Source: Octopus sinensis
Taxonomy: Eukaryota
DNA: 64,000 nt
Reading direction: 5' to 3'
Assembly (NCBI RefSeq): GCF_006345805.1
Contig: NC_042998.1
Location: 112,840,001-112,904,000, forward strand
Below are positions 2,151 through 55,500 of the stretch, piece after piece (position 1 is the first letter of the stretch; the number at the start of each line of letters is the position of its first letter). The notes below the pieces were generated by a model. The model did not search any database and was not told the DNA's origin. It saw only the letters and a program-made list of their open reading frames with translations. A program made the position numbers and the translations under genes.

Positions 2151-2303
2151 ATTACTTCTACAAAATCTTGTAATTATTCATTCTTTATGTAATATATTTG
2201 AAAGTATAGTGCATATCTTTATTCCTGTCTATATGTATGATGTTGCCTTCATTGATTTGTTTATAATGAAAATATTTTTTCTTAACAATTTTTATATCAT
2301 CAC

Positions 2304-14500: not shown

Positions 14501-14550
<50 letters not shown>

Positions 14551-19866: not shown

Positions 19867-19907
<41 letters not shown>

Positions 19908-22900: not shown

Positions 22901-24190
22901 TCTAACATAATTAGACATAAAGCAATACATTTTCAGAGGGAGGCATGTAGTCAATAAGTTGCAATATTTAACAAGTACTTATTTTACTGAAACACACACA
23001 CACAGTAACTCAGAATTGTCGCAGTTTCAGCAAATCAGATCAAGCCACAAACCAAACACACACAACTCAGAAATAATGTAATTTTTTACTACTAAATAGT
23101 ATTTACCTGATATCCCAAAGCACATTTGCCAACAGCAAACTGTGCTGTGTTTGTGCGATCAAGGCAATCAACACAGTTTGTTCTCACTACTCCAGTTTGC
23201 TTTTTTCCATATTCGGTCTTTATTCCTCGAATTCCTTTAAGTCTGAAGACAATATGACAAAACAGAAAAGCCTTAAGGACAAGAATCATTTTTATCACTA
23301 AAAGTAAACACTTATTTGTTTCATATGCTTTCTAAAACCCCTCCCCGAGTATACTTCTAATGAAATTCACAATCCAAGTGTTTCAATTAATTTTCAAAAT
23401 AATAAAAAATTTAGAGGGATTTAGTACAGTAACTTTGTCATTATTCACAGAACATATCATTACAAAAGTTTCTTACACAAAATTTTTATTTAATATATGT
23501 TATCAATTTCCATGAAAGCCATGATATACTGAGAAAGAGTATATAATATCGCATATATATAAGACAAAACAAAATCACAACAAAAATCTAAAAAATGGAA
23601 TGGAATAAAGGTTTGGATAAAGAAAAACGTTTCTGTTGTTAAAACTTTCTTTAGCTTCAATTTAAGATTGATGAGCTTTGAAAATGAGTTGCATGTCCAG
23701 CCCTGTAGCTTTTTAAAACAGTTTTGTATCATGGGAACAGAAAAAAATCTCAAGTAGAATGACATCAAAAGGATTAAGCAAAGAGATAAGAAAGAAGATT
23801 ACAAAATCACAAAAATTTGAGCTGAAAAAAAGAAAATTTGGGAATTTGGGAATAGACATGCTTGTCAGCATAATTATAGTAAAATGGTGCTTTAGCTGTT
23901 CTAAAAACATTATTTTAAGGAGTGTAGTTTCAGCCATTCAGCTGAGGACATGCTAGGACACCATTATATATATAGGGTTTTTTTTTCTTCATACATATTA
24001 TTCAGTGTCAAGAGTAAGAAATAATCCTATAACATCTCTGTCTTCTCCTTATACATGTCAAACTAGGATTATTAATGTTAAACAAGAAACCTAGAGTGGA
24101 TGAAAGTTCTAGGGGTATGAAATTGTAATTCTCGGATGGCAGGACTGGTAAGTGCATTATACAGATCTAGGGAATGACACATATTAAGTA

Positions 24191-24227
<37 letters not shown>

Positions 24228-30200: not shown

Positions 30201-30247
30201 ATTCCCCGATATTATTCATTTTACACATATGTTCACAGAAACATACG

Positions 30248-30296
<49 letters not shown>

Positions 30297-33200
30297 CATA
30301 CCATCCGAGTGTGATCGTTGCCAGGGTTACTAACTGGCTCCCGTGCCGATGGCATGTAAAAAGCACCATTCGAGTGTGATTGTTGCCAGCACTGCCTTAC
30401 TGGCATGTGCCGGTGGCACATGAAAAACAACATTCAAGCCTGATCATTGCTAGTGCCGCCAGACTGACTCCTGTGGTGCAATGGGCACATAAAAAACACA
30501 TTTTGAGTGTGGTCGTTGCCAGTACCACCTGACTGGCCCTCATGCTGGTGGCACATGAAAGCACCCACTACACTCTCAGAGTGGTTGGTGTTAGGAAGAG
30601 CATCCAGCTGTAGAAACTTTGCCAGATCAGATTGGAGCCTGGTGCAGCCTTCTGACTCGCCAGTCCTCAGTCAAACTGTCCAACCCATGCCAGCATGAAA
30701 AGCAGATGTCAAATGATGACAATGATGATGACGATACACACACACACACAAGGGATGCTGAAAAGTTCCTGGCTTTAAGAGTATTGCGAAAGGCCTGGTT
30801 TGAATGCCCAACCTTTCAATTTTTTTTTGCAGGGCTTAGAAAAACTGAAGGATGACTGCAATAAGTGTGTGAATCTGAGAGGGGAATATATGGGATAGAA
30901 ACATAATCAACTGATCCTCTTGTATTTTCTTTTACCCAAAGCCAGGAACCTTTCAGTACCCACTCATATGTGTTTATATATATATATATATATATAATAT
31001 ATATATATATATATCATTTTAAGATATATCTTGCTGACCCCCTTGCCCAGTTGACTCAGCTGGGCTTAATCAAGTCCCCTCTTGCATCCCAGCAGTAACA
31101 AACCACTGGTCTGCCTTCTTTATACAAAGCCACCTAGTGGACTTCTCTGCAACTTCAGTGATGGAGTTTATAGTCCTCCTCTTTGTTTTTTATTTGTTTT
31201 GCAAGAATTTTATTATCTTAACCCTTTAGCATTCAGATTACTTTGTCAAATGTAAGGCTTATTCATTCACATTTTTAGGAATTAATCATGCATTACCTCA
31301 TAGCTCTGAGATTTCGATGATGTAGTTGTTTATTTTTAGAATGACATTGTTGGGCAAGTATGAGAGGTCAGATCTGGCCAGTTTAAACATTAAACAGGTA
31401 GAATATTTGGGCTGGCTATAGATGGTTTAAATGCTAAAAGATTAAAGGAAGGACACACGCATAAGATTATGTGGCCCTAGATGCACACCACATCTGAATA
31501 AAAAAAAAAACTAGTTTGAAAGCTTTTGATCATGTGTCTGCTTGATCAGAATTGTCTAAGGTCTAATCAACGCCAAACTCACTACACTAGACTGCCACGC
31601 ATTTACCATTATATTACACCACAATTATATTGCATTACTGTTTCTTATTATATATATGGATATCACAAACAATAAAGTAAAATTTAATGATCCTCACTTA
31701 CTTCTTACTAACCCCTGCCATATCAAAACCAATGTACTGTATGTTGTGTGAATAGGCTAAGAACTGGTTGAGATACTCAATAGCACTTATAAATTCTTTG
31801 GTCAATATACTTTCATGGCGCCGTTTCTCTCGACGCTGAAAATAGAAAACACTCAAAAACTGAAGCATGATAAAGAACACAGTAGAAGTACTTAACAGAC
31901 TAAAATGTAATGAAAGAAGTAGCAGGAGTAGTAATTGGTAGTCTGGTTGTCTAACCCAAGGTCAACTCTAATGCAACTGATCTATGATGAAAGGCATTCT
32001 AGCAGTGATCATTCTGTCTTTTACTATTTTAAGGCCTGATGTATCTAATAGTATATTATTTTTGACACACATCTCCTTTTTTCTTAAGATGGTAAAGTGT
32101 AGTTTGAGGAAAATTTGGTTGTTATTTCAAGCAGGTCAAATGAGTGTGGAATAATAAAACATGAGTGATGGAATAATCATCATCATTGTTTAACATCTGC
32201 CTTCCATGCTGGCATATAGGTGAATATTTCTCCATTAAAGGGCCTAGCTTTTATATGGTTGCTTGACATGCTAGAAACAACAACAAAATCTTCCTCAAAT
32301 CATACGCAACCATCTTTAAAAGTTAAATGACATATGAAGCATTAAGAACTAGAAATAATTATGCAGTAAGGAAGAAAATGTTATTAATCTACAGCTAAAT
32401 TATTCTAATTTTACCAGAAAATACAGGACACATTTCAATCTTATTGTGACTTCATCAACAATGTACAACCCTCATTGTACTTCCTAAAGCTTTCAGTCCA
32501 ACAGCCAGCAAAAAAAGTGAGTATGTATGTCAAGAATAGCTCTGTGGTTAAGAAGTTTGCTTTGCAATTAAGGAATTTGGAGTTCAATCCCACAACATGA
32601 TACTTTAGATAAATGTCATTTGCCATAGTCTTGGGTCAACCAAAGCCTTGTGAGTGAACTATGGTAAATGGAAAGTCTATGGAAATCTATCAGAGAATGA
32701 TTCCCATTTTTAGGTGGCAGACTTAATCTATCACCTGATTTAACACCATCACCTGTCCCATAGGAGCCTGAAGAGGACTCCACTCTATGGCAAGCATTTG
32801 GTTTATGTGAGACAACTTGCTGCCACCTCCCTTCATTTTCCGAGGCTCTTAAAAAAGGGATCATAGGTACTGTCCTTCTTCTTCTCACTAAGCCATTAAA
32901 AACTTTAAAATAGATATAAAAATAAAAACGACCATAAAGATTATGCTATTGCATAAGTTCTCTCTGAGTAATCAAACACAGCATAGGAAATCAGACAACA
33001 AATGAGACAAAAGAGTACTATATTTGATGACACACACAGGCTTTGTTTCAATTATTATTGAAAATAATGAAGAATTTAATAAAATATCTGTCCTTATTGA
33101 GTGGATTTTTGGAACATAAACTGTCACAAAATTTATATGGAAGCATTTAATTTAAATCACTTTAAAACAGGGAGTATGTATCATACAATCAAGGACAGTC

Positions 33201-33633
33201 TCAAGTGGGTTGGTAACAACAGAGTTAAATTAAATTAATTGGATTACTTTTTTATTGGTTTTAACAAATGTATGCGATCCTGTTGGGACATGTATAAACA
33301 AAAAAACTTTAAAATGCAATAAACAACTATTACAAGAAATAATGAGTATGAATTTGAATGCTACAGAACGCTCACCTTCACTAAGTTAAGAACAATAATA
33401 GGAGCTCCAAATCGCTTTATAACATCATTGAAGTGTTGACCAGCAACAAAAGCATAAGGGTCTGCTTGATCGACTGAAAGGTAGGAGAGAGAAGTAAATT
33501 ATTAAGATATACACGAGTACCTCGGTTTTCAAATAACTCTGATCATGAATAAATCATGCTTTATCTCCTGTCTTTCTCATATTCATTTAATACAGTAGTA
33601 CTTTGGTTTACAAATGCCTCTGATCATAAATAG

Positions 33634-33665
<32 letters not shown>

Positions 33666-36073
33666 GTAAAGCACAATTTATTCATGATCAAAGTAGTTCG
33701 AAAATTGAGGTACTATTGTATTACCATTTTAGCTTATTGGTAAAATAAGGTTCTATTTGAACCTTGGGTTATGAAGATATGATGATTTCAAATCAGCACT
33801 TCATGCTTAACATCCACTTCTAATTACACGATGACTTCAAGAATATACATGGCCTTACAAACCAAATAAATCAACAAAAATACGTTTTCCTAACAATCTT
33901 AGAAAAAAAAACAACTAATGTTAAAATTACTTTTTTTTTTTAATGTCCCACTCTTGTCGGCATAGAAAAATGGGTGTAATGATACAATGACGATGATGAG
34001 GTGAAGGATGAAGCGGGTGGTGGTGGTGGTGGTGGTGACAGCAGCAGCAGCCATAGGCCATGAGGTTAGATTGTTGTATTATTGGCCACTAAGTCATAAG
34101 TTCATAACCTACAACAGCTTGCTTACCTTCAGGCCATTTGGATAAAATATAGGTGCAACACACTAACTTCACAGCTGAATTTCTGGCAAAAAGAACTGGA
34201 ACTGCAACAGTTCAGTATTGGGAAATACTCAAATACATAAAAACTGCATCTCAAAAACTGTGACTAACATAAAGCTGGTCACCAACATACACTAACTTGG
34301 ACCCACAGATGTGCTGTCTTCTCTCTGCCTTTTCTGATACTACTATAATGATCTCTGCTACTCAAAGTTGATTGGTTTCATGCCATCTCCTACCTTATTT
34401 CTCTCTCTTCCTCCCATTACCCATACTGTTTGCACCACTCAAACAACTATACCCGTCCTTTCCTTCAGAGAATGTCACTTCACAGGAATTCCTTTCTATT
34501 TGTTTATTCCCGTAGCTATTGGTCTGCAAATGTTCAAACGGAATTTTAACAACATCAATCTCACCAGCCTTGGAACGATAAAAAAAAAACTGTACCAGTA
34601 AAAAGGTAAGCACTGCTGTCATTCAAGAGCAAGTCTGACTTGGTAACTTGTACCATGCTCTCATTAATAATTTTTGTTGCCTGTGTAGTCACAAGCAGTC
34701 ATTAACACTTTTTTGGTTCTCCCACCCTTGACCCAGCAGAACAACTAGAATGTGAAGCAAGAGGGAGAGAAGGTTGCACCAGTACTGGAGTGTACTTTCA
34801 TTTTCAGCTGAAGGAATCGGTGCAACATAATGTGAAGGGTTTTGCTCAATGAGACAGAGACAATGTGCCACCTGGTCCAGAAACTGAACCTACAATTTCA
34901 TGCTTGTGAGCCTAACACCCTAACCACAAGGCCAAACATCTTCACTGTGAAAAATGCGTGGAAAAGACTTTTTGAAATATATGAAAGCTGCTGGCACTCT
35001 ACATAACATTATTATTCTTCTAGAATAGAGAGTATAGTCCCTTCAACTAGTCATGATTAATATTTTATGAATACTTAGAGATGAAATGTAAAGTTCTTTA
35101 CCAACAGGATTTAAACTTAGAATGTTAACAAAACTCAATTCTAAAACCATCAAATGAGAAAGAAGGCTACAGTCAGTTATCAGCATTTGACAGGTATGTA
35201 TTTTATCTAAGCCATAGGCTTGTAAATCTTGACGTGACTTGAACTCATAACATAAAGTGCTGTAACTAAATATTACAAGGAATTTTATCCATTACTCTAC
35301 AGACACTACCAATTTACCATCATTCCAAAGTTAGATATTAATAAAAAAAATAAGAAATGAAATATAATTGCTTTAAAAAGATGTATATGTTTACAGAACT
35401 TACCAACAATTTGAGGCTTGGGAACCATTTTTGAAATATCTTGAGACCAGAACAAAGGTATGGAACCTCGGAGTTGCACAAAAGACGAAACACAAGCAGA
35501 ATTCAGGAATGTTACTGAAGCATCATGGACAATTTGTTCTGTTTCAACTTCATTTGCTACTGCACCCTACAAACAGAAAAGAGATCCAATGTTTACATAG
35601 CTGATGATAATGGAGTTTTCTATATGGATTTTACACAGTGTTTGGAATATATACAAAATGATTATTATTTATTCAGAGTAGTATTTGACTGGCAAGTAAC
35701 TTGATCTGAGACCATGTATAGAAATTCAAGCAGTTACAACATAGAAGAGTCATTTAATAATACACAAGGCCATTAAATTCACTTTAAATTTATTTCATAA
35801 GTTCCACTGTTATGTGATGAAAACTTTGACATTTCATGAAATAAATTTGAAGTAGCTTTCTATCATTGAACCTGTGGCCATATCAGGGTAACCCCTTCTC
35901 AGAGTTGATTATAGTCAAGTATAGTCAAGCATGGAATAAACTGCCTGCGTCAGTTGTTGACTGCCATGACACTGCATCTTTTAAGGCCCTCATGCTTTCC
36001 GAAATCCGCCGAAACTACACCTGATTATATATACACTTTAGATGAGTTGTAGTGCACCTGAGCACTGTACACA

Positions 36074-36104
<31 letters not shown>

Positions 36105-39100
36105 CCAACTTAAGAAAGATGCAAAGGTAGAATGGATCTGGTTGGGCATTGAATTTATAATGTAAAGAGACATAAACTAAATACTACGAAGTATTTTCTC
36201 TAAGCTCTACCAATTGTTATATATACATATATATATATATATATCATCGTCGTTTAACGTCTGCTTTCCATGCTGGCATGGGTTGGACGGTTTGACTGAA
36301 GACTGGCGAGCCTGAAGGCTGCACCAGGCTCCAATCTGATCTGGCAAAATTTCTACAGCTGGATGCCCTTCCTAACACCAACCACTCTGAGAATGTAGTG
36401 GGTGCTATTATGTGCCACCGGCATGAGGACCAGTCAGGCGGTTCTGACAATGACCACACTGCAAAGGTGTTTTTTACATGCTACCTGCACAGGAGCCAGT
36501 CTGGTGGCACTGGCAACAAACATGCTCGAATGTTGTTTTTCACGTGCCACCGGCACATGTCCCAGTAAGGCGATGCTAGCAATGATCACACTCAAATGGT
36601 GCTTTTTACATGCCATTGGCATGGGAGCCAATCAGCAGCCCTGGCAACGATCACACTTGGATGGTGCTTTTAATGTTCCAGCTGCAGCTGATTCTATATT
36701 CCTGGTAAGGCAGCTGCAGGAGAAATACCTAGCCAAAGATAAGCCCCTGTACCTGGCTTTCGTTGACATGGAGAAAGCCTTTGACAGGGTCCCCCGATCC
36801 CTTATCTGGTGGTCAATGAGGCAACTAGGGATAGATGAATGGCTGGTGAGGGCTGTGCAAGCCATGTACAGGGATGCCGTAAGTAAGGTTAGGGTTGGCA
36901 ACATGTACACAGAAGAATTCAAAGTAGAGGTTGGGGTCCACCAGGGTTCAGTACTCAGCCCCCTCCTATTTATCATAGTCCTCCAAGCAATTACGGAGGA
37001 ATTCAAGACAGGTTGCTCCTGGGAGCTCCTCTAAGCTGGCGACCTTGCTCTAATTGCTGAGTCACTATCAGAACTGGAGGAGAAGTTCCAGGTGTGAAAG
37101 GAGGGTTTAGAATCGAGGGGCCTTAGAGTCAACCTAGCTAAAACCAAAGTACTAATAAGTAGGAAGGTAGACAATCCACAAATGTCTTCAGGAAGATGGC
37201 CCTGCTCGATCTGTAGAAAAGGTGTAGGTAGAAACTCCATAAGATGTACCCAATGTAAGCTATGGACACATAAGAGGTGCAGCAATGTTAAAGGAAGGCT
37301 AACTGGGAAGATAGTTTTTGTATGTGGCAGATGCTCAGGAGCATTAACCTCTGAAAATCTGCAGAAAACAACTTCCGTCACTTTCCAGGGGGAAAAACTA
37401 GAAGTAGTTCATAGCTTCCGTTATCTAGGTGACCAAGTCAGTAGTGGGGGTGGGTGCGTTGAAAGTGTAACTGCAAGAATAAGAATAGCCTGGGCAAAGT
37501 TTAGGGAGCTCTTACCTCTGCTGGTGACTAAAGGCCTCTCGCTCAGAGTAAAAGGCAGACTGTATGATGCATGTGTATGAACAGCCATGCTACATGGCAG
37601 TGAAACATGGGCCGTGACTGCTGAGGACATGCGTAAGCTCGCGAGGAATGAAGCCAGTATGCTCCGATGGATGTGTAATGTCAATGTACATACTCGACAG
37701 AGTGTTAGTACCTTGAGAGAAATGTTGTACCTAAGAAGCATCAGTTGTGGTGTGCAAGAAAGACGATTGCGAGAATGGATGAAGATAGGTGTGTGAAAAA
37801 GTGCCAATCCCTAGCAGTTGAGGGAACCCGTGGAAGAGGTAGACCCAGGAAAACCTGGGACGAGGTGGTAAAGCACAACCTTCGAACTTTAGGCCTCACT
37901 GAGGAAATGACCAGCGACCGAGACCTTTGGAAATATGCTGTACGTGAGAAGACCAGGCAGGACAAGTGAGCCCAGCCCACTTATGCATGCCTTTCCTCCC
38001 TTGGACACACCTGTTGAGGCAAGCGAAGTCAATATCGAACCTCATCCGACGACAGGCACCCATACCAACCCCCTTTGCTTGCGAAGACCTGTTGGGGCAA
38101 GTGAAATCGAAATCGGAATCGAAATTGAACCAATCCTATGACTGGTACCCGGCAGATGCCAGGAGCCCTGGACTGGTGGTACGTAAAAAGCACTATCCGA
38201 ATCGTGGCCGATGCCAGCGCCGCCTCGACTGGCTTCCGTGCCGGTGGCATGTAAAAAGCACCAATCCGACCGTGGCCAGCCTCGCCTGGCACCTGTGCTG
38301 GTGGCACGTAAAAAGCACCCACTACACTCATGGAGTGGTTGGCGTTAGGAAGGGCATCCAGCTGTAGAAACATTGCCAGATAAAACTGGAGCCTGGTGCA
38401 GCCTTCTGGCTTCCCAGATCCCCGGTCATACCGTCCAACCCATGCTAGCATGGAGAACGGACATTAAACGATGATGATGATGATGATGATGATGATGGCA
38501 CAAGTGCCAATCAGGTGGTATTGTCATTGGCCACATCAGCGATTTTGATTTCACTTGCCTCAACAGGCCTTCACAAACAAAGTTTATTGCCCAATGAATG
38601 AGGGGTACTCATAAGTGGGCTGATTACACCCACTAGCATAGGCCATGGGTTATGGTTTCACTTGGCTTATCAGGTCTTCTCAAGCACAGCATATCTCCAA
38701 AGGTCTCGGTCACTATTCATTGCCTCAGTAAGGCCCAATGTTCGAAGGTCGTGCTTCACCACCTCATCCCAGGTCTTCCTGGGTCTACCTCTTCCACAGG
38801 TTCCCTCAACTGCTAGAGTGTGACACTTTTTCACACAGCTCTCCTCATTCATTTGCAACACATGACCATACCAGCGCAGTCATCTCTCTTGCACACCACA
38901 TCTGAGGCTTCTTATGTCTAACTTTTCTCTCAGGGCACTTACATTCTGTTGTATATGCACATTGACATTACACATCCAGTGGAGCATACTGGTTTCATTC
39001 CTTGCAAGCTTATGCATGTCCTCAGTAGTCACGGCCCATGTTTCACTGCCATGTAGCATGGCTGTTCGTACACATGCATCATACCATCTACCTTTTACTC

Positions 39101-39658
39101 TGAGAGAGAGGCCCTTTGTTACCAGCAGAGGTAGGAGTTCTCTGAACTTTGCCCCAGCTATTCTTACTCTAGCAGCTACACTTTCAGAGCATCCACCCCC
39201 GCTACTGACTTGGTCCCCTAGGTAACATAAGCTATCAACTACTTGTAGTTGATAGCTTCTGTGATAAACATTAATGTTTATGTGTGTCTGTTTTGTTTAT
39301 AAATGTGAGAGAAGCTGTTCTCTGCACATTTTCAGTGTTTATAGCACCTGAGCATTTGCCACATACATAAACTATCTTCCCAGTTAGCCTTCCTTTGATA
39401 TTGCTGCACCTCTTATGCGTCCATAGCTTACATTAGGTACATCTTATGGAGTTTCTACCTACGCCTTTTCTACAGATCGAGCAGAGCCATCTACCTGAAA
39501 GGATTTGTGGTTTTTCTGCCTTCCTACTTATTAAGACTTTGGTTTTAGCTAGGTTGACTCTAAGGCCCTTCAATTCTAATCCTTGCTTCCACACCTGAAA
39601 CTTTTCCTCTAGTTCTGATAGTGACTCAGCAATTAGAGCAAGGTCATCAGCTCTAATG

Positions 39659-39707
<49 letters not shown>

Positions 39708-41548
39708 ATCTAAAAAATTCTGTTCCATTTTTATTTTATCACTTAGGAAAGAATAGCAGCAGTTATGACTCTTGTCCACAATTTGTTGGGACCTTTAAGA
39801 CTTGTAAGCAGGAGGAAAGTATCCACAAATTGGAGACCCGGTCCAAATACAAGTCTTATATATTAATGTTGATCTGGTAATAACTGTATATATTAACCCT
39901 CCTGTGACTATGATTTAAATGAAATATACTGTTTATGTGGTGTGTTGAAAAATAATCAAGCATTTGGAGGGATTTAGTTTACTAGACTAACTTATTTATT
40001 ATTAATCTGGTTAGGAAAATGTCTTAATAAAAGGTTTCTAACATAAAATTATAATGGAAGGTTTTAATTTAAATGACTGGCCTGGTGCAGCCTTCGGGCT
40101 CCCCAGACCCCAGTTGAACCGTCCAACCCATGCTAGCATGGAAAGCGGACGTTAAACGATGATGATGATGATGAACGCTTTTAAACAGGAAGGTTTGTAA
40201 AATAGAATCAGAGGCATTTTCAGGTAGGTTTGTATTGGAAAAGTTATATGATTAGATCAAAGAGATTTTTAAAGGAATTCAGTGTAATATATAATGCAAA
40301 CTTTTAGGTGAAACAAGAGAATGTAAAAGAGAATAAAGAAAATCTTACTTTGTTGTTGGCTCCTCTCTTTAAGAAACGAGTTCCGGCAAACTGATTTGAC
40401 CGGCGACCAATTAGGGTCAAATAAATAGGTTTACCAAATACACAAATATCTAAGAGAAGTTAAGGAGAACAGAATGTTGTAAATTCACTGACCCTTTCTT
40501 GTCACTATTCTTACAACTACATACTAAATAAACTAAAGGAGGACCTTCTAAGTAGCTACTTCACCTACAAGTAATAGTAGATTAATATCCCTCAAATTCA
40601 CACCCAGCTGTTTTACAAAAAGTAAAACTCATTGAATAATGTAGTCATGGACACAATCAATTAATTCAATATGTCAAAATAAAAGATGAGATGATAGACC
40701 CAATTAGGATCTTTCTGCATAGGCCTGTTAAATCAAGGCTGATATGAGATGAAACAAAAAGGAGAGTGGTCACTTAACTTACAAGAAATATCAGTAAAAT
40801 TTCCCTTAATCACAGTTCAATCTTTAAAAAAATAATTGAAGGCACATGCCTCAATGAATGATAAGATGGTTACAGCTGTAACACTTTTGAATCTGTGTCT
40901 GTTGCATTAGGGTTAAACAACAAATAAATTCAAAGAACAAAATTTAAAAAAATTTTCACATCCACTATGAATGAGTAATATTCCCCTAGTACCTTCACTA
41001 TCCAAAAGCATTTTAGTGCTGGTGACTTTAGCAAAAATATAGAAATATACTTTCTTTACAAGTAGTCAAATAAATAGCATATATAAATTGCACATACAAA
41101 ACCGACCAAAGCCTTGTGAGTTGATTTCAATAGAAACTGAAAGAAGCCCATCATGTGTGTGTGTGTATTCCAAAGGAGTGGAATCAGTAGAATATATCAT
41201 TCGTTTATCATTTAACATCTTACATTTGAATCCCCAGATCATACTCACCAATATATATATATATATATATAAGTTCAGCAAAAATTTAGATTCAAATGAA
41301 TATGGTACTTAATTTAGATGCACCAGAATTCTGTATGGTGTTATCCATAAAAATCCGTGGGGTGATTATAATCAAAATAAGCAACAAGAATGATTCCGGT
41401 AATTTGGTACGATCGTTTCGTACTACATCATTTTATTAAATGTTGTAAGTATTACAACAGTTTTAAAATGCTGAGCACTCATCAGTCAATTATAGAGGTT
41501 TTCCATTAATACAAAAATGTTCATATCAAGTGGAAACATTATAGAGAA

Positions 41549-41586
<38 letters not shown>

Positions 41587-44500
41587 AGAACGGTATCCAA
41601 CCATAGCAAATCTGCCTCAATGAATTCTGTGTGATCCATGCATGGAAAAGTGGATATGAAAATGAGAAGATGATCATACACAAACATATTTATATATGTA
41701 CATATGGAAACCATCAGAAGCCCACTGTTTGACAAGGTTTTGCATGTTTACTTTCTGTGAAACAGGCACAGTAAAACCCAAAGTGTGTGCAGTGGAATCA
41801 AACAAGGAACCACATGGTCATGAAGTTAACTACCGAAATCTACAGCAGTGCTTGCACCCATTCAGCTTCCATCAAGCTGGCTTGTGTTCAAGAGCAACCC
41901 AGCTGTAATTATCTTATCTTTTTGTAAATCAGAAGATACACTGTCCAATATATCCTTTCTTTAAAATGAAATTGAAGGAGAATTAGTTGTTATATTTAGC
42001 AGATTTAGTAACTGCATAATAACTCTCACATTTGTTCAAAAATAACACTGTACTCCTGAGAACAGAGGTTAAACTACCTAAATTTTAAAGAAATTTTATC
42101 ATAACGTTGACAATTTTAATGTCCTGTAATAATTTACAGAAACATATGTATATAGTTACAAATATTTATATCCTGATATGAACCATCTTTATTCAGCCCT
42201 ACTACCATGAGCATTATTTTACATTCACTTTCCATATTAGCACGGGTTAAACAGTTCGACACAATCCAAGGAGTCAGAGAACTGTGTTGTGCTCCAATAC
42301 ACAGTTTTGGCATTGTTTTCTATGGCTGAATGCCCTTCCTAATGCCAAATAAGACCCTAAAATACTCTCTTTGTTTAAAAACTAAGTTTATAACTTCACA
42401 AGAGCAACTCTTGAAGTGTTAAAACATTAATAGATTTCATTAAACTAGTTTTTGCTTAGCCTCAAGTTAAACCTGAACAGTAAACTAGTGAAATTTTCAC
42501 ACAATGATAAAACAAAAGGATATTGACTTGTCCAATAAAGCCATGTATAATGTTGATAACCCAGTCTGAATGCACCATATCTTTACATGGCTGCTGAAGA
42601 GCTGCATTCCAAACAAATTTACTTGAAGCAACGTTTTTCACTCCTAAAATACAGTCTGAAAGAAAGAAAGGAGAGAAAAAGTGAAATTTATAATGTTCCA
42701 AATAAAATACGTACTCTACGTTAGTTAGAAGAATGAGTCAGAAATTCTTTTTTATAAAGTTATTACACCTATCAATATTCATTCACTCAAACCCTATCTT
42801 TCAGTTATTTAAGGTCTATCAAGTAGTGATAACAGCCATGCCTTGCTGAAGAGGTCTAAGAAGTTTTAAAATCACTTAGCATAGATCAGATCTATGTTCC
42901 TCTATTCAATTTTTGCATAATTTAAATCTTGCTTTTCTTAGTATGAAACAATTTCTTTTACTGATTTTAACTAATATTTTTGATTTATTACATTTCATTT
43001 CATTTCATTTCATTTCATTTGGGTTTGAGTCCATGCTCAGTCCAAGTCGAAGACTCCACCCTCAGAGTCTGGTGTGGTTGCCAGGTTGTATTCTCTGCTT
43101 AAATTTGACATGTGTAGGAGCGAGTTTGAGTCAGTTTGTGCTCGTTGTGTATATCCTGGGAGATGGGGTTCATCTCTAATGGTGCTTAAGTATCTATCCA
43201 GTTGCAATTTGAATGATTCCACACTGCATCCTGATAGATTTCTGACATGTACCGGAATGGAGTTGAACAGTTGTGCTCCTCGAACCAACAGACTTGATTC
43301 TCGCAGGGTTTTTGCTGCCTGGCCAGCCTTTTTGTTGATTGGTGGCAGCTGGCAGCGTCTTCCGTGGCGCAGTGAGTGGTAGGTTTTGATACCAAAGTTT
43401 GGCACCTTTTGCTCTATCATTTTCCAAATGTATATAATTCGGTATCGCTCAAATCTTCTTTCTATTGAGTACATCCTCAAGGTTTTGAGTCTTTGCCAAT
43501 AGTCCAGGTCCCTCGTTTCTGAGAAGTATGAGGTAAAATTTCTTTGGAGCGATTCTATCTTAGATAGTTGGCCCTTTGTTGTTGGTGACCACAACTGAGA
43601 ACAGTAGTCAATCCTCGGAAGTATCATACTGTTCCAGAGGGTTTTCATTGTTGAGGTATCTCTTGATTTGAAGGTGCGCAAGATCCACCCGCTGTACTTT
43701 CTTGCAGTAAGACAGACTGAGTCAAGGTGTTCTCTGAATTTTAGGTTGGTTCCCATGTGGATGCCTAAATCTTTCACACACTGTTTTTCCATTATTTGTT
43801 GTCCTGATGGGTTTCTGTAGTTTGTTGTATTTTTCAGATCTTGATCTGTTCCGTAGCGAATTAGTTCAAACTTCTTATCATTGAACAACATGTTGTTTGT
43901 TTCCTGCCATTTATATATGGTGGTCAGGTCCTTTTGTAAGGCCTCTGTATCCACCTCGTCTTTGATTTGTCTCATGACCCTGGTGTCATCAGCAAAGGAT
44001 GAGACGTTGCTGGTTGTATCTTCATCTATGTCAGAGATGAGGATGAGAAACAGGATTGGGCCGAGTACTGTACCCTGAGGAACACTGCTGGTCACAGGTG
44101 ATGGTGTTGAATGGGTTCCATTCACAGTGACTGTTTGAGTTCTATTTGTAAGGAACTCGTGTATCCATGTACCAACTTTTCCTCCTACTCCTAGCTTTCG
44201 AAGTTTGTGACCCAGGATGCCATGATCTACCTTGTCAAATGCCTTGGCAAAGTCGAGGTAGATAACATACATTAAGTATGTTTGCATTAATTAAAGTACA
44301 TTAGTTAAATTTGTTAATATGGCAAATAACGAGTCTGGCAAAGATAAACATAATGAGAGTGAAAATAAAAGTTTTGAAAGCATAATTAGACATGGTTGCA
44401 TAGTTAAAATTTTGCTTTCCAACCACGATTCCAGATTCAGTCCCACTGCCTTCCATCATGGGCTAGTCCCTTCTACAATAGCCCTAGGCCAACCAAAGCT

Positions 44501-47500
44501 TTGTGAGTGTATGTGGTAGATAGAAACTGATAGAAGCTCGTCATACACACAAGTATCTATCTATCCATATATATATCTATATATATATAATTTAATGAAC
44601 AGAGTTGATGTGTGAAGATAGTGTATGAGAATTGATCAACTCTGTAGGGTTAATTATGTAATCTTGTTATGCACATTGTGAACTATTCAATTCAACAGTA
44701 ATTTTTCTATCAATTCACATACACTGTCTTCATACACCAACTCTGTCCACCAACTTGATAAAAAAAATAAACTTACCTTCTGGTAAAGTGTAAGGAGTAG
44801 CTGTAGTGTGAAACTTACTCTTGTCCACAAAAAGATATGAGTAAGAATCAGAATTGTGAGACAAATCTTTGGAACCTGATGGTGAGTTTGTTTGAGCCAT
44901 GTTGTATTGTAGAGAGTGAGTTAAATCATAACTGTAACTGTAATTCAAATAAAATTAATATAATTAACAGTTAATTGTAGTAAACAGAGAAAATTCAGAA
45001 TCATCATGGTTATCGACAACTTTTTATTATCTATGTCAACAATGGGTTGGCTGTGATATATAATTATCATTATCACAATGTAACAGCAATATTATGTGCC
45101 ATGTAAAAAGTACTGGTGATGGTGCCACATAAAAAGCACACAGTAAACTCTGTAAAGTGGTTGATGTTAGGAAGGGCATCCAGCTGTAAAAACCAAGCCA
45201 AAACAGACTATGGAACCTGGTGTGAGCCCTGGCCTTGCTAGTTCCTGTCAAGCTATCCAACTCATGAGAGCATGGAAAATGGACATTGAATGTTGATGAT
45301 GATAACAAATACAACTGTTTAAATGTCTGAAGGTGTTGTTAATAAGAGCATATATGTCAGTGATCTAGTGGACAAAACCAATATTATGTATAGTTTCTAC
45401 TCTGAATTTGTGAAGGCACATGGCTAAGTGGTTAAGGTGTTGTGCTCATGATCGAAAGATCAGGATTCAGATTCCTTGACCAGGTTGTGTGTTGTGTTCT
45501 TGAGTAAAACACTTCATTTTACATTGCTCCAATCCACTCACCTGTAAATGAGTACCCCTGTAATGGATCAGCTTCCCGTTCATAGGAAATGTGATTTTGG
45601 TCACCAGCAAGCCATGGGAAACAAGTAATCAGTCTGATGAATCCTCAAACTCAAGACACAACTCATACACTTTGAATGTAACCTTGTACATATTCAAGAA
45701 TAAGACACCTGACAAAGCTTGAAAATCAAACCAATTGCAATGTATTGTAGATGCAAATATTTTTGTATCTAAAGACAATATTAATAGTCTCATCTTTAGA
45801 TTCAATCTAATTAGAATTGTGATTAATTGCTACAGGTAAATCATCAATGTATCATTAATCATGAAATGGTTTTAGAATAAAAATAACCTTACCTGAAGTA
45901 GAAATTACTGGAAAGATCTACATTCTGAAACATTTTCACATATCTACAATAAAAGGGAATTAAAACATTGAGCTAATCACAGCAATTAATCAAATTTGAA
46001 ATGCCAAACCATCATAATCTCAACATCATTTTAGTCAAAGTAGCCCAATCCTGAGTCCACTCATCAGGAAGGCCTAATATTCTTAATTCCTTTATTAATA
46101 CTGTATTAGTATTTTCCATGTTACACTGAATCTAGATGAGTGTTATTCAATTTTGATGCAGTCAGAATTGTATAAATAGTTTGGCGAGTTACAGTGAGAT
46201 TCAACTTCTGCTGAAATGCATAAGCAAAAATCAAACACATCTGAGCTGTTTTGTGTATCCACTAATGAAAATATTTGTATTGTTCATCACCAAATAATAT
46301 TTTCCCTTAACCACTTGCCTGCAAATACATTAGCTGTACAATATTCTAAACATTAAATATATATTCACTTTACTCTCAGTTCACATATATATCAGCTGAT
46401 ACTCAGAATAAATTAACTTGTAGCTTAGATTCAGTGAATCACTGAACAAGGAAAATCATATAACACCACATAGAATTGATAGAGCATAACAATTAATTCT
46501 ACATATGAGAGTATTACAAGTCTTTGTCTAAAATAATTTTAGAGCAACAATAGCAACAATCTCTTATACAGAACTTTGTTCCAGTGTAACTATTAAAACA
46601 GAATAAAAACTAGTGTTGGGTCTTATTAAAAAAAAAAAAAAACTATTTTTTAAAAGCCATAATAGGAGTTGTGAAGGAACACAGCCTAGTGATTACGGTA
46701 TAGCACTCATGATCGGAAGACTGTGGTTTTCCAGTGGTGCATTGTGTTCTTGAGCAAAACATTTCACTTCATATTACTCTTGTCCACTTGGTTATAAATG
46801 GGTTAACCCTGCAATGGACTGGCATTCTGTTCAGGGAGCATTCTGCCAGCCTGCCTGCATAGCCAGCAGAGTGGGATCATCCGAAAGCTACAATGCAAGA
46901 TAGTACATTGTGACCAACGGTATATAACATCCAATAGTTTGGATTTGGGGAAAAGCTTTACATGACTTTACCCAGGAACGAATATCTGCCAACTGTTGAA
47001 TGGAGTTTTAGTTTTTAACGGCCGAAAGCAAAGTTTGAGTTTTCTATGGCAATTTAGTGAAGAACACTTCTTTGAGATAAGATTCTTCTATCTGCTGATC
47101 TCCCAGAAGTTCATTCATCCTTCGCAGAAGTTGTGTGGGTTTTTTATTACCCAATTCTTCATTGTTAAATAACTTCGCAAACTCTTTTTGTTTCGAATTT
47201 GATGTTTGTTTCAATATTTCTTCTTTAATGGAAGAATACAAAACTGGTTCGATAGGGTTTACTAGCAAATCTCTAATTTCATTACTTAGAGGTGGAGGTA
47301 AATTGCTAAGCATTATATTGTATTTCTGTTCTTCATTTGTAATTTTGTTAGCTTTAAAGCTTGCCTCCAGTTGTGCCAACCAAATAACCGTGTCTCCAGT
47401 CCACGGAGGACAAGGCAATACATTCACAGAAGCTTGTGTGTAATTCCTATCGAAATATGACATCTCAAATTCTTTTAAATTCTGCTCCATTATATGTATA

Positions 47501-50500
47501 AATATTTTCTCAAAGGAAAATTTTTTTTTTCCTCGTTATGTTACTAAGCTTTTACCAGCTCAAAATATAATTTTTATATTGCTAGAAAGTGCAACTAAAA
47601 TTTTCTTTCTAAAGTTTCTTCTTCAGCATTCTTTTTGTTTCAACTTACTTTTAACTATTTGTTAATAAAATATTTATGCAATAATTCTGTAATTTATGTT
47701 TATTATATTATTAAATTTTCCACCAGTCTGTCGGTGTTTATAATAATTGTTTTTTTATTCAAAAAAATTTTTTTCTATAGGTTTTCCTATAGGCTGTTTT
47801 AGTCGGAGTCACCAATTTTCCTACGGCAGTTTTCTCTTTTATTACCTTAAGCTTTCTCTTAGGTTATATTATTTTATTTGGCTTTTCTCTGAGTAAGGGA
47901 GAATATAATGATTCAACGTCACTTATACTCAAGTGTTATCATTATACCTAAAACCCTAACTACAGTTATAACGTCATATAGACATATACGCATGAAATGC
48001 TATATTAATGACATGTATGTATATTTTCTTCGTGTCCTTTTAAACCGCTATAAGAAACATAAATTAAAGATTACAGAAATGCATATTTATTTATGCTCAG
48101 TTGAAAAACAAACGTGAAGAGAAACATTTTCTTTTAATTAGTTTTTATTATATAAATATAACATTTTATATTAATTACAGTAGGAAAGAACTTTGTCATG
48201 AAGAAGAACGACTATAAATTCATTAACTAATTTTTCTTTTCTAACTAATAATTTAACCTACAAATCAAAATAGATTTGTGATTAACTCTAGACATGGCAT
48301 GAAAATTACCGATGTCTCAAAAGAGTGAGTGTCGTGGATTTAAGTGACATCCAAACAACACTAAAGTTTTTCCCCAAATCCCGGGTCTTTATAACTGCTC
48401 AACTTGACTAAAAAGAATTGAAATTCAGGACAAATATTCTTTACGAAACTTTTAGAATCTTTATATGAGCAGTTATATTAACCAATGGAAAAAACGAAAA
48501 TGATAATTCTTCGGCAAAGACATTACATCATATTGCCAATTCGCACCCCATTTCAAAATGGTTAAAATGGTTATTGCTACACAGTGATAATAAAAGTCAT
48601 ACAGCAATGATCATAAGTTGTAGAATAGCATTTACAGAGAAGTTTTATAACAGGAGTCATATAATAGCACTTGTATAATAGAAGTAATGTCATAAAATAA
48701 CATTTATATAATAGAAGTAATATAATAGATGTATATAAGTCAAATAATAGCAGCTGTATAGAAAAGATAATAATAGCAGTCATATAATAAAAGACAGAAG
48801 AGCAGTCATATAAATGAAGTCATAATCACAAGTAATAACATAAGCTAAATAATGAAAATGATATCATATCAACAGCTAGATAACAAGTCTTATTACAGCA
48901 GACATACAATAACAAATCTATAATAATAAAAGAATTGGAGAAAAAAGACCAATGCCATACCGACTTTCATCCGAATGGATATGATGAGTTCCCACATTAG
49001 GTATGTATATCATACATGTATCCTCAACTTTATAAATTGTGTGGGGACCAATTAATGCAACACGGCGCCGTTTTGTAATTAAGATCATATAATAACCTTC
49101 TAAAAAGCGTACAAACCCTGCAGAAAATAGAGAATATTACACATCAGTAAGCATAAAGTACTACAGATTAATAGGTATTTTATTTAGAGAAGCTGGAGTT
49201 TAGTTTATAAATAATATCTTTTAACAAAAGCACAAGTTCATAAATATATATGGGGTGGAATATAGCTGATTAAATCAATACCCATTTTGATTAGTATTAA
49301 TTTTATCAACAATGGAAAGATGACTGTTAAAGTTGACGTCAATAGAAACTTAATTCAAAATATAAAAAGGATGTTACTGAATACTGCAAAACAATTTAGT
49401 CAGCACTCTACTGATGCTTCCATCATACTTTGAGCTTATTAATAATAACAGAGTGAATATATAATACACTAGCTTAAAAGCCGCCCAACAGAATGGCTTT
49501 TAAGCTAGCTCCTGTGGCGGGCTCTTCATTGGGCCTTGGGCCCAACAATGACACTTCATGCATTGAGTACATAATAAATTTTATTAAACTTGACCAATAT
49601 TTTTCAAGCAATGAACAATCTTCATCAAAACAATGATATAATTTGTTGACTTGGAACTTATTGCAAAGCTGCATAACAACATTTTTGTCTTTCCATTTGG
49701 GGGTCAGTACAATTTGTTTTCCTATCTAACCTCCTTCTTTCTGTTGATTGTTTTCAATCATCACCATCACCACCACAATTGCCTTACACACACCATTCAG
49801 AATTCTAATGCCACCACCATCAAAACCTTTTACTTCACTGCCTACCCCTCTACCACCATCACAACTGTCTTTCACATCGCTTACTATCACCATTATCCCT
49901 GACCACCTCAGCTACCACAACTACCATCATCATCACTGCCGCCTCCGCCTCTATCACAACTTGAGCTCATACTATTACTATCACCCCATTTACATCACAA
50001 GTGTCAATCTACTACCACCCTCACTGTCTTTATGCCTACTATTACACTCACCCCAACATGAGGAATAGTAGAAGTGTCATTGAATAGTGAGAGAGGCGGT
50101 TAAAGTGTGATACACTGAGACACATAAATTCGTTTTGGCATTTTTTTATTATAGATGTGAACACACCTCCACACAAATACTCCAGGGTGGAGCATTTTTT
50201 CACGATTTTTGATTTTGTGATAGGAGTAGTGCAGAAAAGTTGTGAATGGATATCAAAACTATTATCATCATTTAATGTTCATTTTCCATGCTGGCATGGT
50301 TGGATAGTTTGACTGAAAACTGGTAAGCCGGGAAGCTTATGGCAAGGTTTCTATGGCTGGATGCCCTTCTTAATGCCAACCTCTCTGAAAGTGTTTTGGA
50401 TGCTTTTTACATGCCACTGACACAGCTGCCATTGACCTGACACCAACATTGGTCACAACTATGGTCTCACTTGGCTTAACAGGTCTACACAGCACAATAT

Positions 50501-51880
50501 AGTGCGAAAGGTCTTGGTCACCTGTCACTGCCTCCATGAGGCCTAGTGCTTGAACTGCTTGTTACGTGCCACTGGCATGGGTGCCAGTCAGGCGGCACTG
50601 GCATCAGCCACGACAATGATTTCACTGAGCTCAAAGGTTTCACAAGCACAGCATATCTCCCAATGTTTGATGGATGCTTTTAATAGGCCAGTTACGGGAC
50701 ACTGGTATCAGCCACAACTACAATCTCACTTAGCTCGATGGGTCTTCTCAAGCACAGTATATTGCCAAAGGTCTTGGTCACTTGTCATTGCCTCCATAAG
50801 GCCAAGCATTCAGAGATCGTGCTCTACCACCATGTCCCAAATAACTGGTATAAGTAGACCAAATAACTGATGTAAAATCTTAGAACTCTATGGCAATATC
50901 TTCTGTTTCCACAAATGCATCAAACAATGGAAAAAGAGGGAAAAAATACTTCAACGTGTTTTTCTCTATGACTTCATCTTCTATCTCCACAAGAAGGGAC
51001 AGGAGTGTACTGTAATTTACATCTACATGATAAATTTTCTGAATTCAATAAATTACAATATTTATATTTTTGCATATTTTGAGGCAATTGTGGAGGCAGA
51101 TGAAGTCAGAAAAAAAAAACATGTTAAGTCATATTTTAGAGTAATTTCAGTCATTTAAAAGCCACAGTCATTTCACATTTCACAGTAATTTAAAAGCTAC
51201 CCAAAGAAGATGCAATGGAAACTGTATTTCATAGCTAATAAATAAGTAGAGGCAGTTTTTTCCACTTTTTCCATTTTTCAATGCATTTCTGGAGATAGAA
51301 GATATTGTCACAGAGTTCTAAAATTTTACACCAGTTACTTTGATAGTCATTCACAACTTTTCTGCACTACCCATATCACGAAATCAAAAATCATGAAAAA
51401 ACGCTCCACTCTAACAAACACACACTAGTCAACTTTGATCATTTGTCCCTCTTCCTTTTAATGTATGTTTTTCTCTTCCATGTTAGCAGAGAGGTATGGC
51501 ATGCTGACCAAAGGAATCCACCTCCTCTAAGATAATGCCCCAGTTCACAAAGAGCATGTTACCCAGATGAAAGCACACTCCTGCAGTTATGAAATCCTTC
51601 CTCATCCCCCTTACTCTCCTGACCTTGCACCATTCAATTCCACTCCTTTCCAACCATGAAGTCTTTTTTGAAGGGAAAACACTTTTCGAATGATGACAAC
51701 TTATTTCCAGATGTAACCTACTGACTTCTACAGACGAGGTCTTCACAGCTGCATAAAATGATGGGAGAAGTGTGTTACCATTGGTGGTGGTTATGTAGAG
51801 AAGCATAGCATAATTATGCCAAGTTTTGTTTATCCCAGACCTTGGGAGTGGGTCAGGTGAAATCTTTAATGAACACCCCT

Positions 51881-51918
<38 letters not shown>

Positions 51919-52485
51919 CACAGACACATATATTCATGTCAGGTCACTTTCGAGTGCTACTGATAACATGTAACCCAGTGCAACCTGTTGCATCGTCGGG
52001 TTGTCGGCGACTAAACCGGCAACCCCACCAAGCTTGCTTGGTGAGGAGGGTGTTTATTGGACACCCTGCGGGTTGAAAAACAAAACCCGTCAAAGGGCGA
52101 GGAACTCTTGAGAGTCAACGGCCATCCAATAAATATCTCAAGGCTGTATCATGCGCGAGGACATAGAAATAATCGACTGAATACCCGATCACATGGTTAA
52201 ACCATTGGGAGTGAAGGACTCCAAGCTTTTGTTAGGGCATCCTTCTAGAAGGTAACTCAGGTAACTGAGATAACTCCAACATAAAACCTGCGGCTCAGTG
52301 GTTACCGATGATGTTGACTTGATCTTCTTTTCAGATTATGGCTGCTGTTGCTTAGTGAGTGGGATTGACTCAGTGCACAGTCTTTCCTCACTTTAAAAAA
52401 AAAATCTTCTTGCACAGGCATTGCATGATAACAACATTGATTAAGCTTCGTGCAATAGCCATACTCGATAATGAGGGGGCAGCCA

Positions 52486-52547
<62 letters not shown>

Positions 52548-55500
52548 CAAGCTTTGTACATTTTCTATCAGCTAAATTTAGCTCATAAGGCATGGTCAGC
52601 TTGGAGCAATAGAAGAACACTTGCCCAAGGTGCTAGCTTCCTGCACACGTGTGTGTGTGTGTACTTGGTCCAACTCATGCCAGCATGGAAGATGGACATT
52701 AAATGATGATGATGATTGTATGTGTGTGCAGCTGGGCCTCCTTGTCTTGACATTGTGTGATAGCCGTAAATGAATATCACTAGCTGTGTCATTCATTTCC
52801 AATCTTCCATGAGGAAATTTTATCTTGCTTGGAAACAAGTGAGAGTTGGTGATTACAAGGAATGTAGCCATAGTAAATCTACTTCAGCAAATTTCCTCTG
52901 GCCCATGCAAGCATGAAAAAGTGGACATTACAACAAAGATTATGATAATTGAATCTCTTCTACATGAGTGAAAACTTGTTACACATAAACAGAGTGCATT
53001 GTATACAAGCTTTTTTCTTGGCAGTTTCTTTACAGTTTCAATGAAGATAAAGGATCTGTGCCCTTGACTTTTGTAAGACAAGTAAGATTGATGCAGTTGT
53101 CATTCAGCTTGAGCAGCTGCAAGTTGATTATTGTGAGGAACATGTGGCTTGGAAGTAAACAACATTTGGTTGCAATCAAAAAAGGAACCAAACAGAAAGA
53201 AAATCAGAAGATAGCCTGAAAAGTACAACAACTTACCAGCAATACCGAAAGCTGATTCAGATTTAAACAACCCAGAACCACCTTTTAGAATACTTGATAG
53301 GGGTCTATTACCCGATTCGATCATTGCAAGTGTATTACGCACTTCATCTGCTGTGTACACTTTCTGCAAGAAAGAAAAGACAGATTACGGTCAATATAAT
53401 CCCCACCACTCCTACTACTAGCACTATCATTACCATTATTTTAAAACAATCTTTTTATTTAAATTCTAAATGAAATTATGGTAGGCTCTCATAGTCTAAG
53501 AAAGGCAGCTCTGCCATTTCATGCTAAACCTGACAAATGATTCGTTTATAGTGATCAAGTGTTTGTGCAGTACATCAGCTCACTATCTCCATGAAATCAG
53601 TGTTGCTCAAACCGGTGCACAATGTACTACATGTCAGGTATTGAAGTGATCAGAGAGTAATGTGAGAAGAAGTGTTTTGCTCAAGAACTCAATACATCAC
53701 CTGCTCCAGGAATTGATTTCACAATCCTGAGTGCAACACCCTAAACACTAGGCCATGTACCCTCAGTAATTCTAAATGATAGCAGTCATATAAAAAGCAA
53801 ACATATAACTTCCTCCCTGCAATCACAGAAGCCCTTTTCATAGTCTCTGAAACAGGTGGGAGATCTTCAAACTGGAGATCTGACCTGAATGTTCACAACA
53901 GGGTGTGCTCAATAAATAGCAGTCAACAGCCAGATGGATTTTAAACTGGGTGACGGATTAATTCTACCATCTAAAAATATCTCTGCACAGGATTTCCATA
54001 CTGTTTTGCCTATCAAGTTTGTTTCATGAGACTTTGCTTGACCAGAAGTTACAGTAGAACACACTTGTGTAAGGTACAACACAGTAGGATAAAACACAAA
54101 ACTTACATAGTTGCACAGCAAAATTCTTAAACATACAGCAATGCTTGCATCCATATAATGTTTCTGTACAAGACAATTTCACTTACTTTAGCTGACATCA
54201 ATGTAGAATACATGTCAGAAATTTCTGGAAATGATACCTCTTATAGACTAAAATCTCTTGCAAATGACTCAGTAGATATGGCACTAAGCTACAAGATCAG
54301 GAATCTTAAGATCATAGCCACTGAGCACAGTGTATTCGGATACATTCATGAGTTCAGATTCAAATCAGAAATTAAGAACTAAATCTTCTGGATATGTTTT
54401 CTACAATAAGCTGGTATTCTATCATAGGAAAAGTGACTTATCTGCTTTATCACTGGAAGTAAACATAAGCACCATTCATCCTGAATTGTTAGCTTACTTT
54501 TCAAACATCAGACTCACTCCCCACAGTATACTCCCATTCAATTTATAACTCTAATTTTACATTCATCTCCCTTGCCTTATTTCAAAGGAATATATTTTAT
54601 TTGATAAAGCTATTGAGACATTAAGTATGTTTATGAAAGATAAAAAAGTAAAAGTTGATTGAAATTTTTTAACCATACATGAATATTGAATAACTGTAGA
54701 AAATTTGAAAAAAAAATGGATGCAATTTATGACCTTACCATGTCATCTTCCATAATTAGGTCACGTGGCTCATTTCTATGTATCTTGAGAATGCGAAACT
54801 TAGTCTCATCATTATTTGAACCAACTACATATATACGCTGAAAATGAGAGAATATTACATGATACATTACCAAAAATAGAGATGGCCTATATTCAAAGAG
54901 AAAAAAGGCAAATAATAGTGAACTACAGATTTAAACACACTAACTGTAGATTTCCTATTCATGGAAGATTATACATTGTTTAATTACAAAAGATTCTCTA
55001 ACCAATGAAGGAACCTTTATGTGGTCGTTCAAACTGCTGAAAGTAACAGCCAAGTCTCCCTCAAACCACCTTAAAAAAGAAATGTTGGATAAAGGTGCCA
55101 TGGATTACTTGGACATAACAAAAAGATGGGATGGTCATGACTGTAACATCTAAGTTATAACAATAACTAAAGATTTTCACTTCTAAAGAAATCAGTATGT
55201 CAACAACCAGTAAAGACAAACCAATAAGGGAACTTCTACAAGGGAGTTGCACCTGCAAGAAATAGCAGACAAATGTCATTCATATCCAAATCCTGCCATC
55301 TTGAAAAGGAAGGGACAGAGTGGATAATGTAGTCTGGAAAATGTAATGCCCAACATAAGTACAGTGTAGTTATAGTTGGAATGCCTTTCATTATAGGTTT
55401 GTTGAATCAGCCCTAACCAGGAGCTAAATATTAGCAACAAACAGTTCTACAAATTTTATAACATGCACCTTCAGCTGAAACAGTAAATATCCACTATGAT

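Follow-up and report, generated by a model that had tools for sequence, protein, structure and literature searches.

The seventh intron of the FIG4 gene of Octopus sinensis appears to begin with AT and to end with AG and is the sole non-GT-AG intron among the gene's 22, which raises the question where this intron really starts and ends and which splicing machinery would remove it. The stretch of DNA analysed here, hereafter the window, comprises 64,000 nucleotides (nt) of contig NC_042998.1 (assembly GCF_006345805.1, positions 112,840,001 to 112,904,000 of the forward strand), and all coordinates below are those of the window unless a locus is named. In our view, intron 7 is very probably an ancient U12-dependent intron in which a G-to-A change at the first base, position +1, gave rise to AT-AG termini.

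The exon 7/8 junction of octopus FIG4

FIG4 is a lysosomal phosphoinositide phosphatase that is linked to Charcot-Marie-Tooth disease in humans. The gene was mapped across the window with full-length FIG4 proteins from an exhaustive search, and the coding region of this polyphosphoinositide phosphatase spans 23 exons on the minus strand (5988..58479), from an ATG at 58479 to a stop codon ending at 5988, with the exon 6 donor, at 44777, being placed by octopod proteins. The spliced translation of all 23 exons has 921 amino acids and is identical to the O. sinensis RefSeq protein XP_029657210.1. As such, the window represents the locus of this protein, or one with an identical product, and the RefSeq model already uses the 42524/40449 junction considered below. 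A partial translation of 603 amino acids (exons 1-16) found its best match in Argonauta hians (92%), the 90% cluster of which includes proteins of O. sinensis, O. vulgaris and O. bimaculoides; identity to vertebrate FIG4 proteins amounts to 56-59% over 97-100% of the same query. The product is hence a full-length Sac (Syja_N) domain protein orthologous to FIG4.

Exon 7 (132 nt, minus strand, 42655..42524), the seventh of 23 when counted from the ATG at 58479, is preceded by the acceptor ctttctttcag and ends in phase 1 with ...ATT GGA CAA GTC A (...GGACAAGTCA). Intron 7 (2074 nt, minus strand, 42523..40450) starts with ATATCCTTTTG and ends with TTCTCCTTAACTTCTCTTAG, its 3' splice site AG lying at 40450..40451. 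Exon 8 (101 nt, minus strand, 40449..40349) starts with AT ATT TGT, so that its first two bases complete an Asn codon, and is directly followed by GTAAGA. A preliminary description, made from the letters of the window, had proposed a minor-spliceosome intron with AT-AG termini at this place, and its statements on the exon number, the phase-1 end of the exon, both ends of the intron and the 101-nt exon all agree with the sequence. The peptide joined from exons 7 and 8 matches the SacI homology domain of Pfam (Syja_N, 2e-17), and its best match in the PDB is the Fig4 Sac homology model chain 7k1w_F, to which it aligns without gaps over residues 230-301.

Which donor and which acceptor best fit the protein was examined by combining all donors and acceptors located up to about 30-40 nt from the two exon ends, irrespective of the dinucleotides, and scoring the products against six full-length FIG4 proteins. 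The top product reads ...GQVNICVFG... and reaches a score of 202.8, whereas any pair with canonical termini reaches at most 186.7. Since intron 7 and exon 8 both begin with ATAT, five placements of the intron (AT-AG, TA-GA, AT-AT, TC-TA and CC-AT) lead to the identical mRNA, and RNA sequencing by itself could therefore not separate them. It is the register of the U12 donor consensus that distinguishes them, as only the AT-AG placement puts ATATCCTT there. This junction has the genomic termini AT and AG, reproduces the RefSeq protein exactly and fits all homologues. Among the latter, from cnidarians to vertebrates, there is no insertion or deletion at the exon 7/8 junction. Proteins of squid/cuttlefish clusters, encoded on Logan contigs of about 3.3 kilobases that are probably transcripts, likewise read GQVNICVFG, and the short members of these clusters that were checked for read-through at the junction cover other exons.

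Two in-frame alternatives within the enumerated range had been overlooked in the preliminary description, which had considered a GT at caa/gtcaat and rightly set it aside as being out of frame with this acceptor. The first is a GT-AG candidate, the cryptic GT 21 nt into the intron (catt/GTGTGA, 42501..42502, minus strand), which adds seven residues and has the lower homology score of 186.7. The second would turn the intron into one of the AT-AC subtype, ending at an in-frame AC that lies 9 nt upstream of the AG, within TCCTTAAC (...CCTTAAC), and adding 9 nt to the message. We regard such an AT-AC intron as extremely improbable: the AC belongs to the only good branch-site motif, so that no branch site would be left at a workable distance, and the resulting three-residue insert is absent from all homologues, scores 186.3 against 202.8 and disagrees with the RefSeq protein.

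Public gene models differ at exactly this place. In RefSeq, both O. sinensis and O. bimaculoides have models that read GQVNICVFG and hence use the AT-AG junction. Older O. bimaculoides models (UniProt A0A0L8GG37, A0A0L8GG44 and A0A0L8GHF2) instead use the GT 21 nt downstream, with seven additional residues, and the O. vulgaris model CAI9717902, which reads ...ALQQP-Y-ICVFG, uses a GT inside exon 7 (ccat/GTAAAG, 42585..42586, minus strand; last exon base 42587), with a net loss of 21 residues of the Sac domain. The expectation that gene finders would mis-annotate this intron is thereby borne out for the older O. bimaculoides models and the O. vulgaris model, the junction in RefSeq being right; these divergent models might reflect either faulty annotation or minor isoforms of the U2 type.

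The older O. bimaculoides models also speak to the question whether the A at 42523 is real. One could suppose that it stems from faulty sequencing or assembly, or represents a rare allele, and that the true intron is an ordinary GT-AG intron of the U12 type, as the octopus sequence differs from that of Argonauta, the closest relative examined, by a single transition with identical flanks. However, the O. bimaculoides models read into the intron as V-N-I-L-L-F-Y-H, which is the exact translation of the first 21 intron bases of the window. The Asn in this read-through needs AAT, so that position +1 of the intron must be A in that species, too, since a G would give Ser. As the independent genome of a second Octopus species has the same A, it is very unlikely that the base is due to a sequencing error or is private to one animal, and resequencing is unlikely to show a G at 42523. 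Moreover, the remaining coding sequence of the window matches the RefSeq protein at every residue. We thus consider an erroneous or rare A very improbable.

U12-type signals and the orthologous introns

With the AT-AG junction in place, intron 7 contains both signals expected of a U12-type intron. Its 5' end ATATCCTTT (42515..42523, minus strand, with the A at 42523 as position +1) matches the donor consensus RTATCCTTT at 9/9 positions, and its 3' end reads TTCTCCTTAAC-ttctcttAG. The other 21 of the 22 FIG4 introns are GT-AG introns with donors of the form GTAAG, GTGAG or GTATG, which agree with the U12 donor consensus at 3-6 of 9 positions. The branch-site motif TCCTTAAC (40459..40466, minus strand) matches TCCTTRAY at 8/8 positions, and intron 7 alone among the 22 combines the U12 donor match with such a motif at the proper distance. 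The candidate branch adenosines, at 40461 and 40460, are found at intron positions -12 and -11, just 5' of the AG that restores the frame, with the second of them being tabulated as 10 nt distant from the 3' end, and the optimum for the distance between the branch and the 3' end of U12-type introns is 11-13 nt (PMC3584512).

By themselves, the donor and branch motifs are no evidence, as their counts in the window are at chance level: RTATCCTT is not enriched (5 observed versus 5.5 expected) and neither is TCCTTRAY (10 observed versus 12 expected). What carries weight is their position. Estimated from the motif frequencies in the window (about 4e-5 per position for the donor, multiplied by about 6e-4 for the branch motif within the allowed 8-16 nt), the joint chance of finding both exactly at the exon ends defined by homology is about 2e-8, i.e. 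in the order of 1e-8. The last 25 nt of the intron (TTCTGTTCTCCTTAACTTCTCTTAG) are rich in pyrimidines, partly due to the branch motif itself, and the absence of a distinct polypyrimidine tract as a U12 criterion is hence non-discriminating here.

The comparison of orthologous termini that the preliminary description had suggested, carried out for molluscs and a fish, revealed a U12-type intron in every bilaterian locus examined. Every fetched locus that has an intron here shares its codon position and phase 1 with the octopus gene, and many homologous fragments of open reading frames without an intron read straight through. In Argonauta hians, the donor reads GTATCCTTT, i.e. GTCA/GTATCCTTTG, and the intron continues as GTATCCTTTG..TTCTCCTTAAC..AG with the 3' end TTCTCCTTAACctctaccAG. 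The clam Tegillarca granosa has AAAA/GTATCCTTTA and TTTTCCTAATaatatatAG, the cichlid fish Haplochromis burtoni TCCA/GTATCCTTTG and TTTCCTTTACcgaccacctacAG, and five metagenome-derived loci from ENA (L001-L005) GTATCC and AG, and all of these are U12-type introns with GT-AG termini. The abalone Haliotis asinina has a U12-type intron as well (GTATCCTTGT at the 5' and ACTTCCTTGACtctctccaCG at the 3' end), for which GT-CG is the only placement that reproduces the RefSeq protein. In each of these loci, the GTATCC donor is accompanied by a U12-like branch motif. In Hydra vulgaris, the intron has the donor GTAAGT and an AG at its 3' end and is a GT-AG intron of the U2 type.

Two of these loci deserve a remark of their own. 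The intron of H. asinina (locus L007, 16672-20388) has the perfect U12 donor GTATCCTTGT and the branch site TTCCTTGAC, and a nearby AC would shift the frame; its GT-CG termini are a second non-canonical case at this intron position in molluscs. The H. vulgaris intron (locus L008, 31134-33027) has a donor of the U2 type, GTAAGT, and lacks a U12 branch motif; at an intron position that is old, this looks like a conversion from U12 to U2 type or the reverse.

Position +1 is a G in all orthologues examined outside Octopus. The intron sequences of Octopus and Argonauta have diverged apart from two islands, one of them 5' (RTATCCTT) and the other 3' (TGTTCTCCTTAAC), within which they differ at position +1 only. 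When metagenome contigs of the Joint Genome Institute were scanned for the exact pattern of the exon 7/donor junction, once with A and once with G allowed at +1, there were no matches. Judged from the loci compared, intron 7 is an old minor intron that has been kept between molluscs and vertebrates. Its termini were originally GT-AG, from which the A at +1 derives by a G-to-A change, and the presence of this A in a second Octopus species places the change after the split from the Argonauta lineage. The preliminary description had gone a step further and imagined an intron caught between subtypes. Derivation from GT-AG and a distance of one base from the canonical subtype are indeed what the switching model (PMC1557818) expects, but nothing shows that the change proceeds in the direction of AT-AC.

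If the U12 donor lost strength through the G-to-A change, the intron might instead be removed by the U2-type spliceosome from one of the nearby GT sites (last exon base 42587 or 42503), either as the main product or as a substantial isoform. Both sites keep the reading frame when joined to the same AG, both have been chosen by public gene models, the acceptor region TTCTGTTCTCCTTAACTTCTCTTAG is rich in pyrimidines, and cryptic U2-type donors near U12 donors are known to be activated (PMC3584512). The products would, however, lose a net 21 residues in the conserved core of the Sac domain or gain seven residues at a place where homologues show neither loss nor gain. Furthermore, catt/GTGTGA is a weak U2 donor compared to the GTAAG donors elsewhere in FIG4, and the AT-AG junction is used in the RefSeq models of two Octopus species. 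That Octopus and Argonauta have kept the intact donor and branch motifs within an otherwise diverged intron also counts against a switch to the U2 machinery, which seems to us decidedly unlikely.

A further possibility is that the A at +1 is converted into inosine by ADAR in the pre-mRNA, which would create an effective GU-AG intron of the U12 type and make FIG4 splicing in Octopus dependent on editing. Coleoid cephalopods edit RNA unusually heavily, and ADARs do not disfavour an A as 5' neighbour, which is the base preceding the A at +1; both points speak for this possibility. In addition, A>G mismatches have been found at the first base of U12-like AT-AG introns in human NUP210 and CRYZL1, and editing to GT-AG has been proposed for them (Parada et al., PMC4176328). 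The same study also found AT-AG sites without a sign of editing, and non-canonical termini are compatible with the processing of U12 introns (PMC4176328). The 261-nt region around the octopus donor folds no better than its shuffles (z = -1.0; 33 of 200 shuffles were as good), and the Argonauta donor region folds worse than its own shuffles. The sole inverted repeat that covers the octopus donor (22 nt, 73% complementary, 1.3 kilobases away) belongs to a set of 39 comparable pairs that occur by chance in the AT-rich intron. We would hence give editing only a slim chance. If it were true, FIG4 production would be ADAR-dependent, and no minor intron gated by editing would have been described outside mammals before this one.

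Other features of the window

Much of the length of the FIG4 introns is accounted for by retroelement remnants. These are located in introns 12 (26890-29604, minus strand), 13 (20099-22049, plus strand), 6 (43037-44287, minus strand) and 8 (36402-37580, plus strand), and their open reading frames match the Pfam families Exo_endo_phos_2 (endonuclease) and RVT_1 (reverse transcriptase). An open reading frame of 148 amino acids in intron 4 (47044-47490, minus strand) matches DUF7041 of Pfam (1.7e-17) and is probably part of another mobile element. Intron 14 contains a tandem array (18201-18724) of about 8.5 copies of a G+C-rich unit of 62 nt, and units that resemble it by eye are present in intron 12 (26428-26547) and intron 1 (56246-56350), which suggests a dispersed family that is possibly similar to short interspersed elements. 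Apart from a (TA)n run, the repeats within intron 7 itself are just short, AT-rich and due to chance.

An (AAT)21 microsatellite (19867-19929; TTA/ATT on the gene strand) ends 3 nt before the AG of the exon 14 acceptor and makes up most of the upstream tract, so that changes in its length could affect this acceptor. The U12 donor or branch consensus is also matched exactly at 22254-22261 and 16810-16820 (both minus strand), in introns 13 and 15, respectively, with no exon boundary near, and the number of such matches is that expected by chance; the former, a second GTATCCTT (22261..22254), has no exon nearby and was dismissed on these grounds. Downstream of FIG4 and on the opposite strand, a Ser/Lys-rich open reading frame of 364 amino acids (2077-3171, plus strand), which includes a repeat of 66 nt at 2480-2600, is at most a candidate gene and matches no Pfam family. 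A scan of the whole window with Rfam gave nothing at the gathering threshold: there is no small nucleolar or other known RNA in intron 7 and no small nuclear RNA gene in the window, the latter having no bearing on the rest of the genome.

Splicing and origin of the AT-AG intron

How would an intron with such termini be removed? We infer the actual use of the minor spliceosome, as well as the splicing efficiency, from what is known of U12 splicing. The donor ATATCCTTT would be recognised by U11 and then by U6atac, U12 would pair with TCCTTAAC with the branch adenosine bulged, and the AG 11-12 nt downstream of the branch adenosine would serve as the 3' site. Splicing would then join ...GTCA to ATATTT..., by which the Asn codon A/AT and an unbroken Sac domain are formed. 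As to the history of the intron, a GT-AG ancestor acquired an A in place of the G at position +1 in the Octopus lineage, after the Argonauta split, which yielded AT-AG. Such termini may be tolerated because the recognition of U12 introns hinges on the extended motifs of donor and branch site and less on the terminal dinucleotides. An AU donor reportedly accepts any 3'-terminal base, with C being best, while the penultimate A is essential, as is said to have been found by Dietrich et al. in 2001. The choice of the 3' site in U12 splicing is set by the distance from the branch site (PMC3584512). With all U12 determinants being intact, U12-dependent removal at the AT-AG junction is to be expected.

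Three points weigh against this picture. The pyrimidine-rich 3' region could serve a U2-type acceptor, with two in-frame GT donors nearby; AT-AG combinations have been described as disfavoured and poorly spliced intermediates (PMC3584512); and it is homology, together with a matching RefSeq model, that speaks for the use of the junction. Given the poor splicing described for such intermediates, an efficiency somewhat below that of the GT-AG ancestor is plausible. The preliminary description had also raised the idea that the intron is rate-limiting for FIG4 expression, and this may be so in the light of the general literature, in which U12 splicing is slow and AT-AG intermediates are inefficient (PMC3584512). 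Taken together with the perfect donor and branch motifs, their right spacing, the U12-type orthologues and the listing of FIG4 among human minor-intron genes (PMC7507305; the listing is at the level of the gene), its central claim of a U12-type AT-AG intron in FIG4 is nevertheless well supported.

The octopus intron has close counterparts in mammals. AT-AG introns form the largest non-canonical class of U12-type introns, with 11 cases in human and 8 in mouse; XPO4, ACTR10 and SCN10A have AT-AG in human but GT-AG in mouse or other mammals, and AT-AG has been suggested as a viable switching intermediate (Sheth et al., PMC1557818). The AT-AG intron of ACTR10 is a recent primate derivative of a GT-AG intron (Parada et al., PMC4176328). 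Like these introns, that of octopus FIG4 combines U12 motifs with AT..AG termini, differs from its GT-AG orthologue by one change at +1 and is restricted to a lineage; unlike them, it resides in another gene and phylum, and its switch occurred between octopod lineages and is known from genomic sequence. The minor intron of vertebrate FIG4, as seen directly in Haplochromis burtoni, shares the codon position, phase 1, the donor GTATCCTTTG and a branch motif near the 3' end, but belongs to the canonical GT-AG subtype. With classical AT-AC introns, the octopus intron shares the donor, /ATATCCTT being the exact consensus of that subtype, as well as a branch site of the form TCCTTAAC, whereas the 3' end is AG and the outgroups show that AT arose from GT, with no AT-AC ancestor. 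The edited introns of human NUP210 and CRYZL1 have U12-like AT-AG termini, too, but show A>G mismatches in RNA, while the octopus site lacks a predicted duplex.

Full-text literature searches returned no paper that describes the AT-AG intron of octopus FIG4. A pan-eukaryotic survey that includes O. sinensis in its comparison of minor-intron conservation reports an enrichment of minor introns in molluscs (PMC10639083). The octopus intron is an ordinary member of the documented AT-AG class and points to no new mechanism.

Overall, the FIG4 locus has a practical and an evolutionary side. Pipelines for the annotation of cephalopod genomes should permit U12-type introns with non-canonical termini, as forcing GT-AG at this place damages the conserved Sac domain. 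The locus further offers a datable switch from GT-AG to AT-AG, with a G in Argonauta, an A in at least two Octopus species and a minor intron that is shared from molluscs to fish. As such, it provides a non-vertebrate case for the debate on subtype switching of minor introns and on the viability of AT-AG intermediates.

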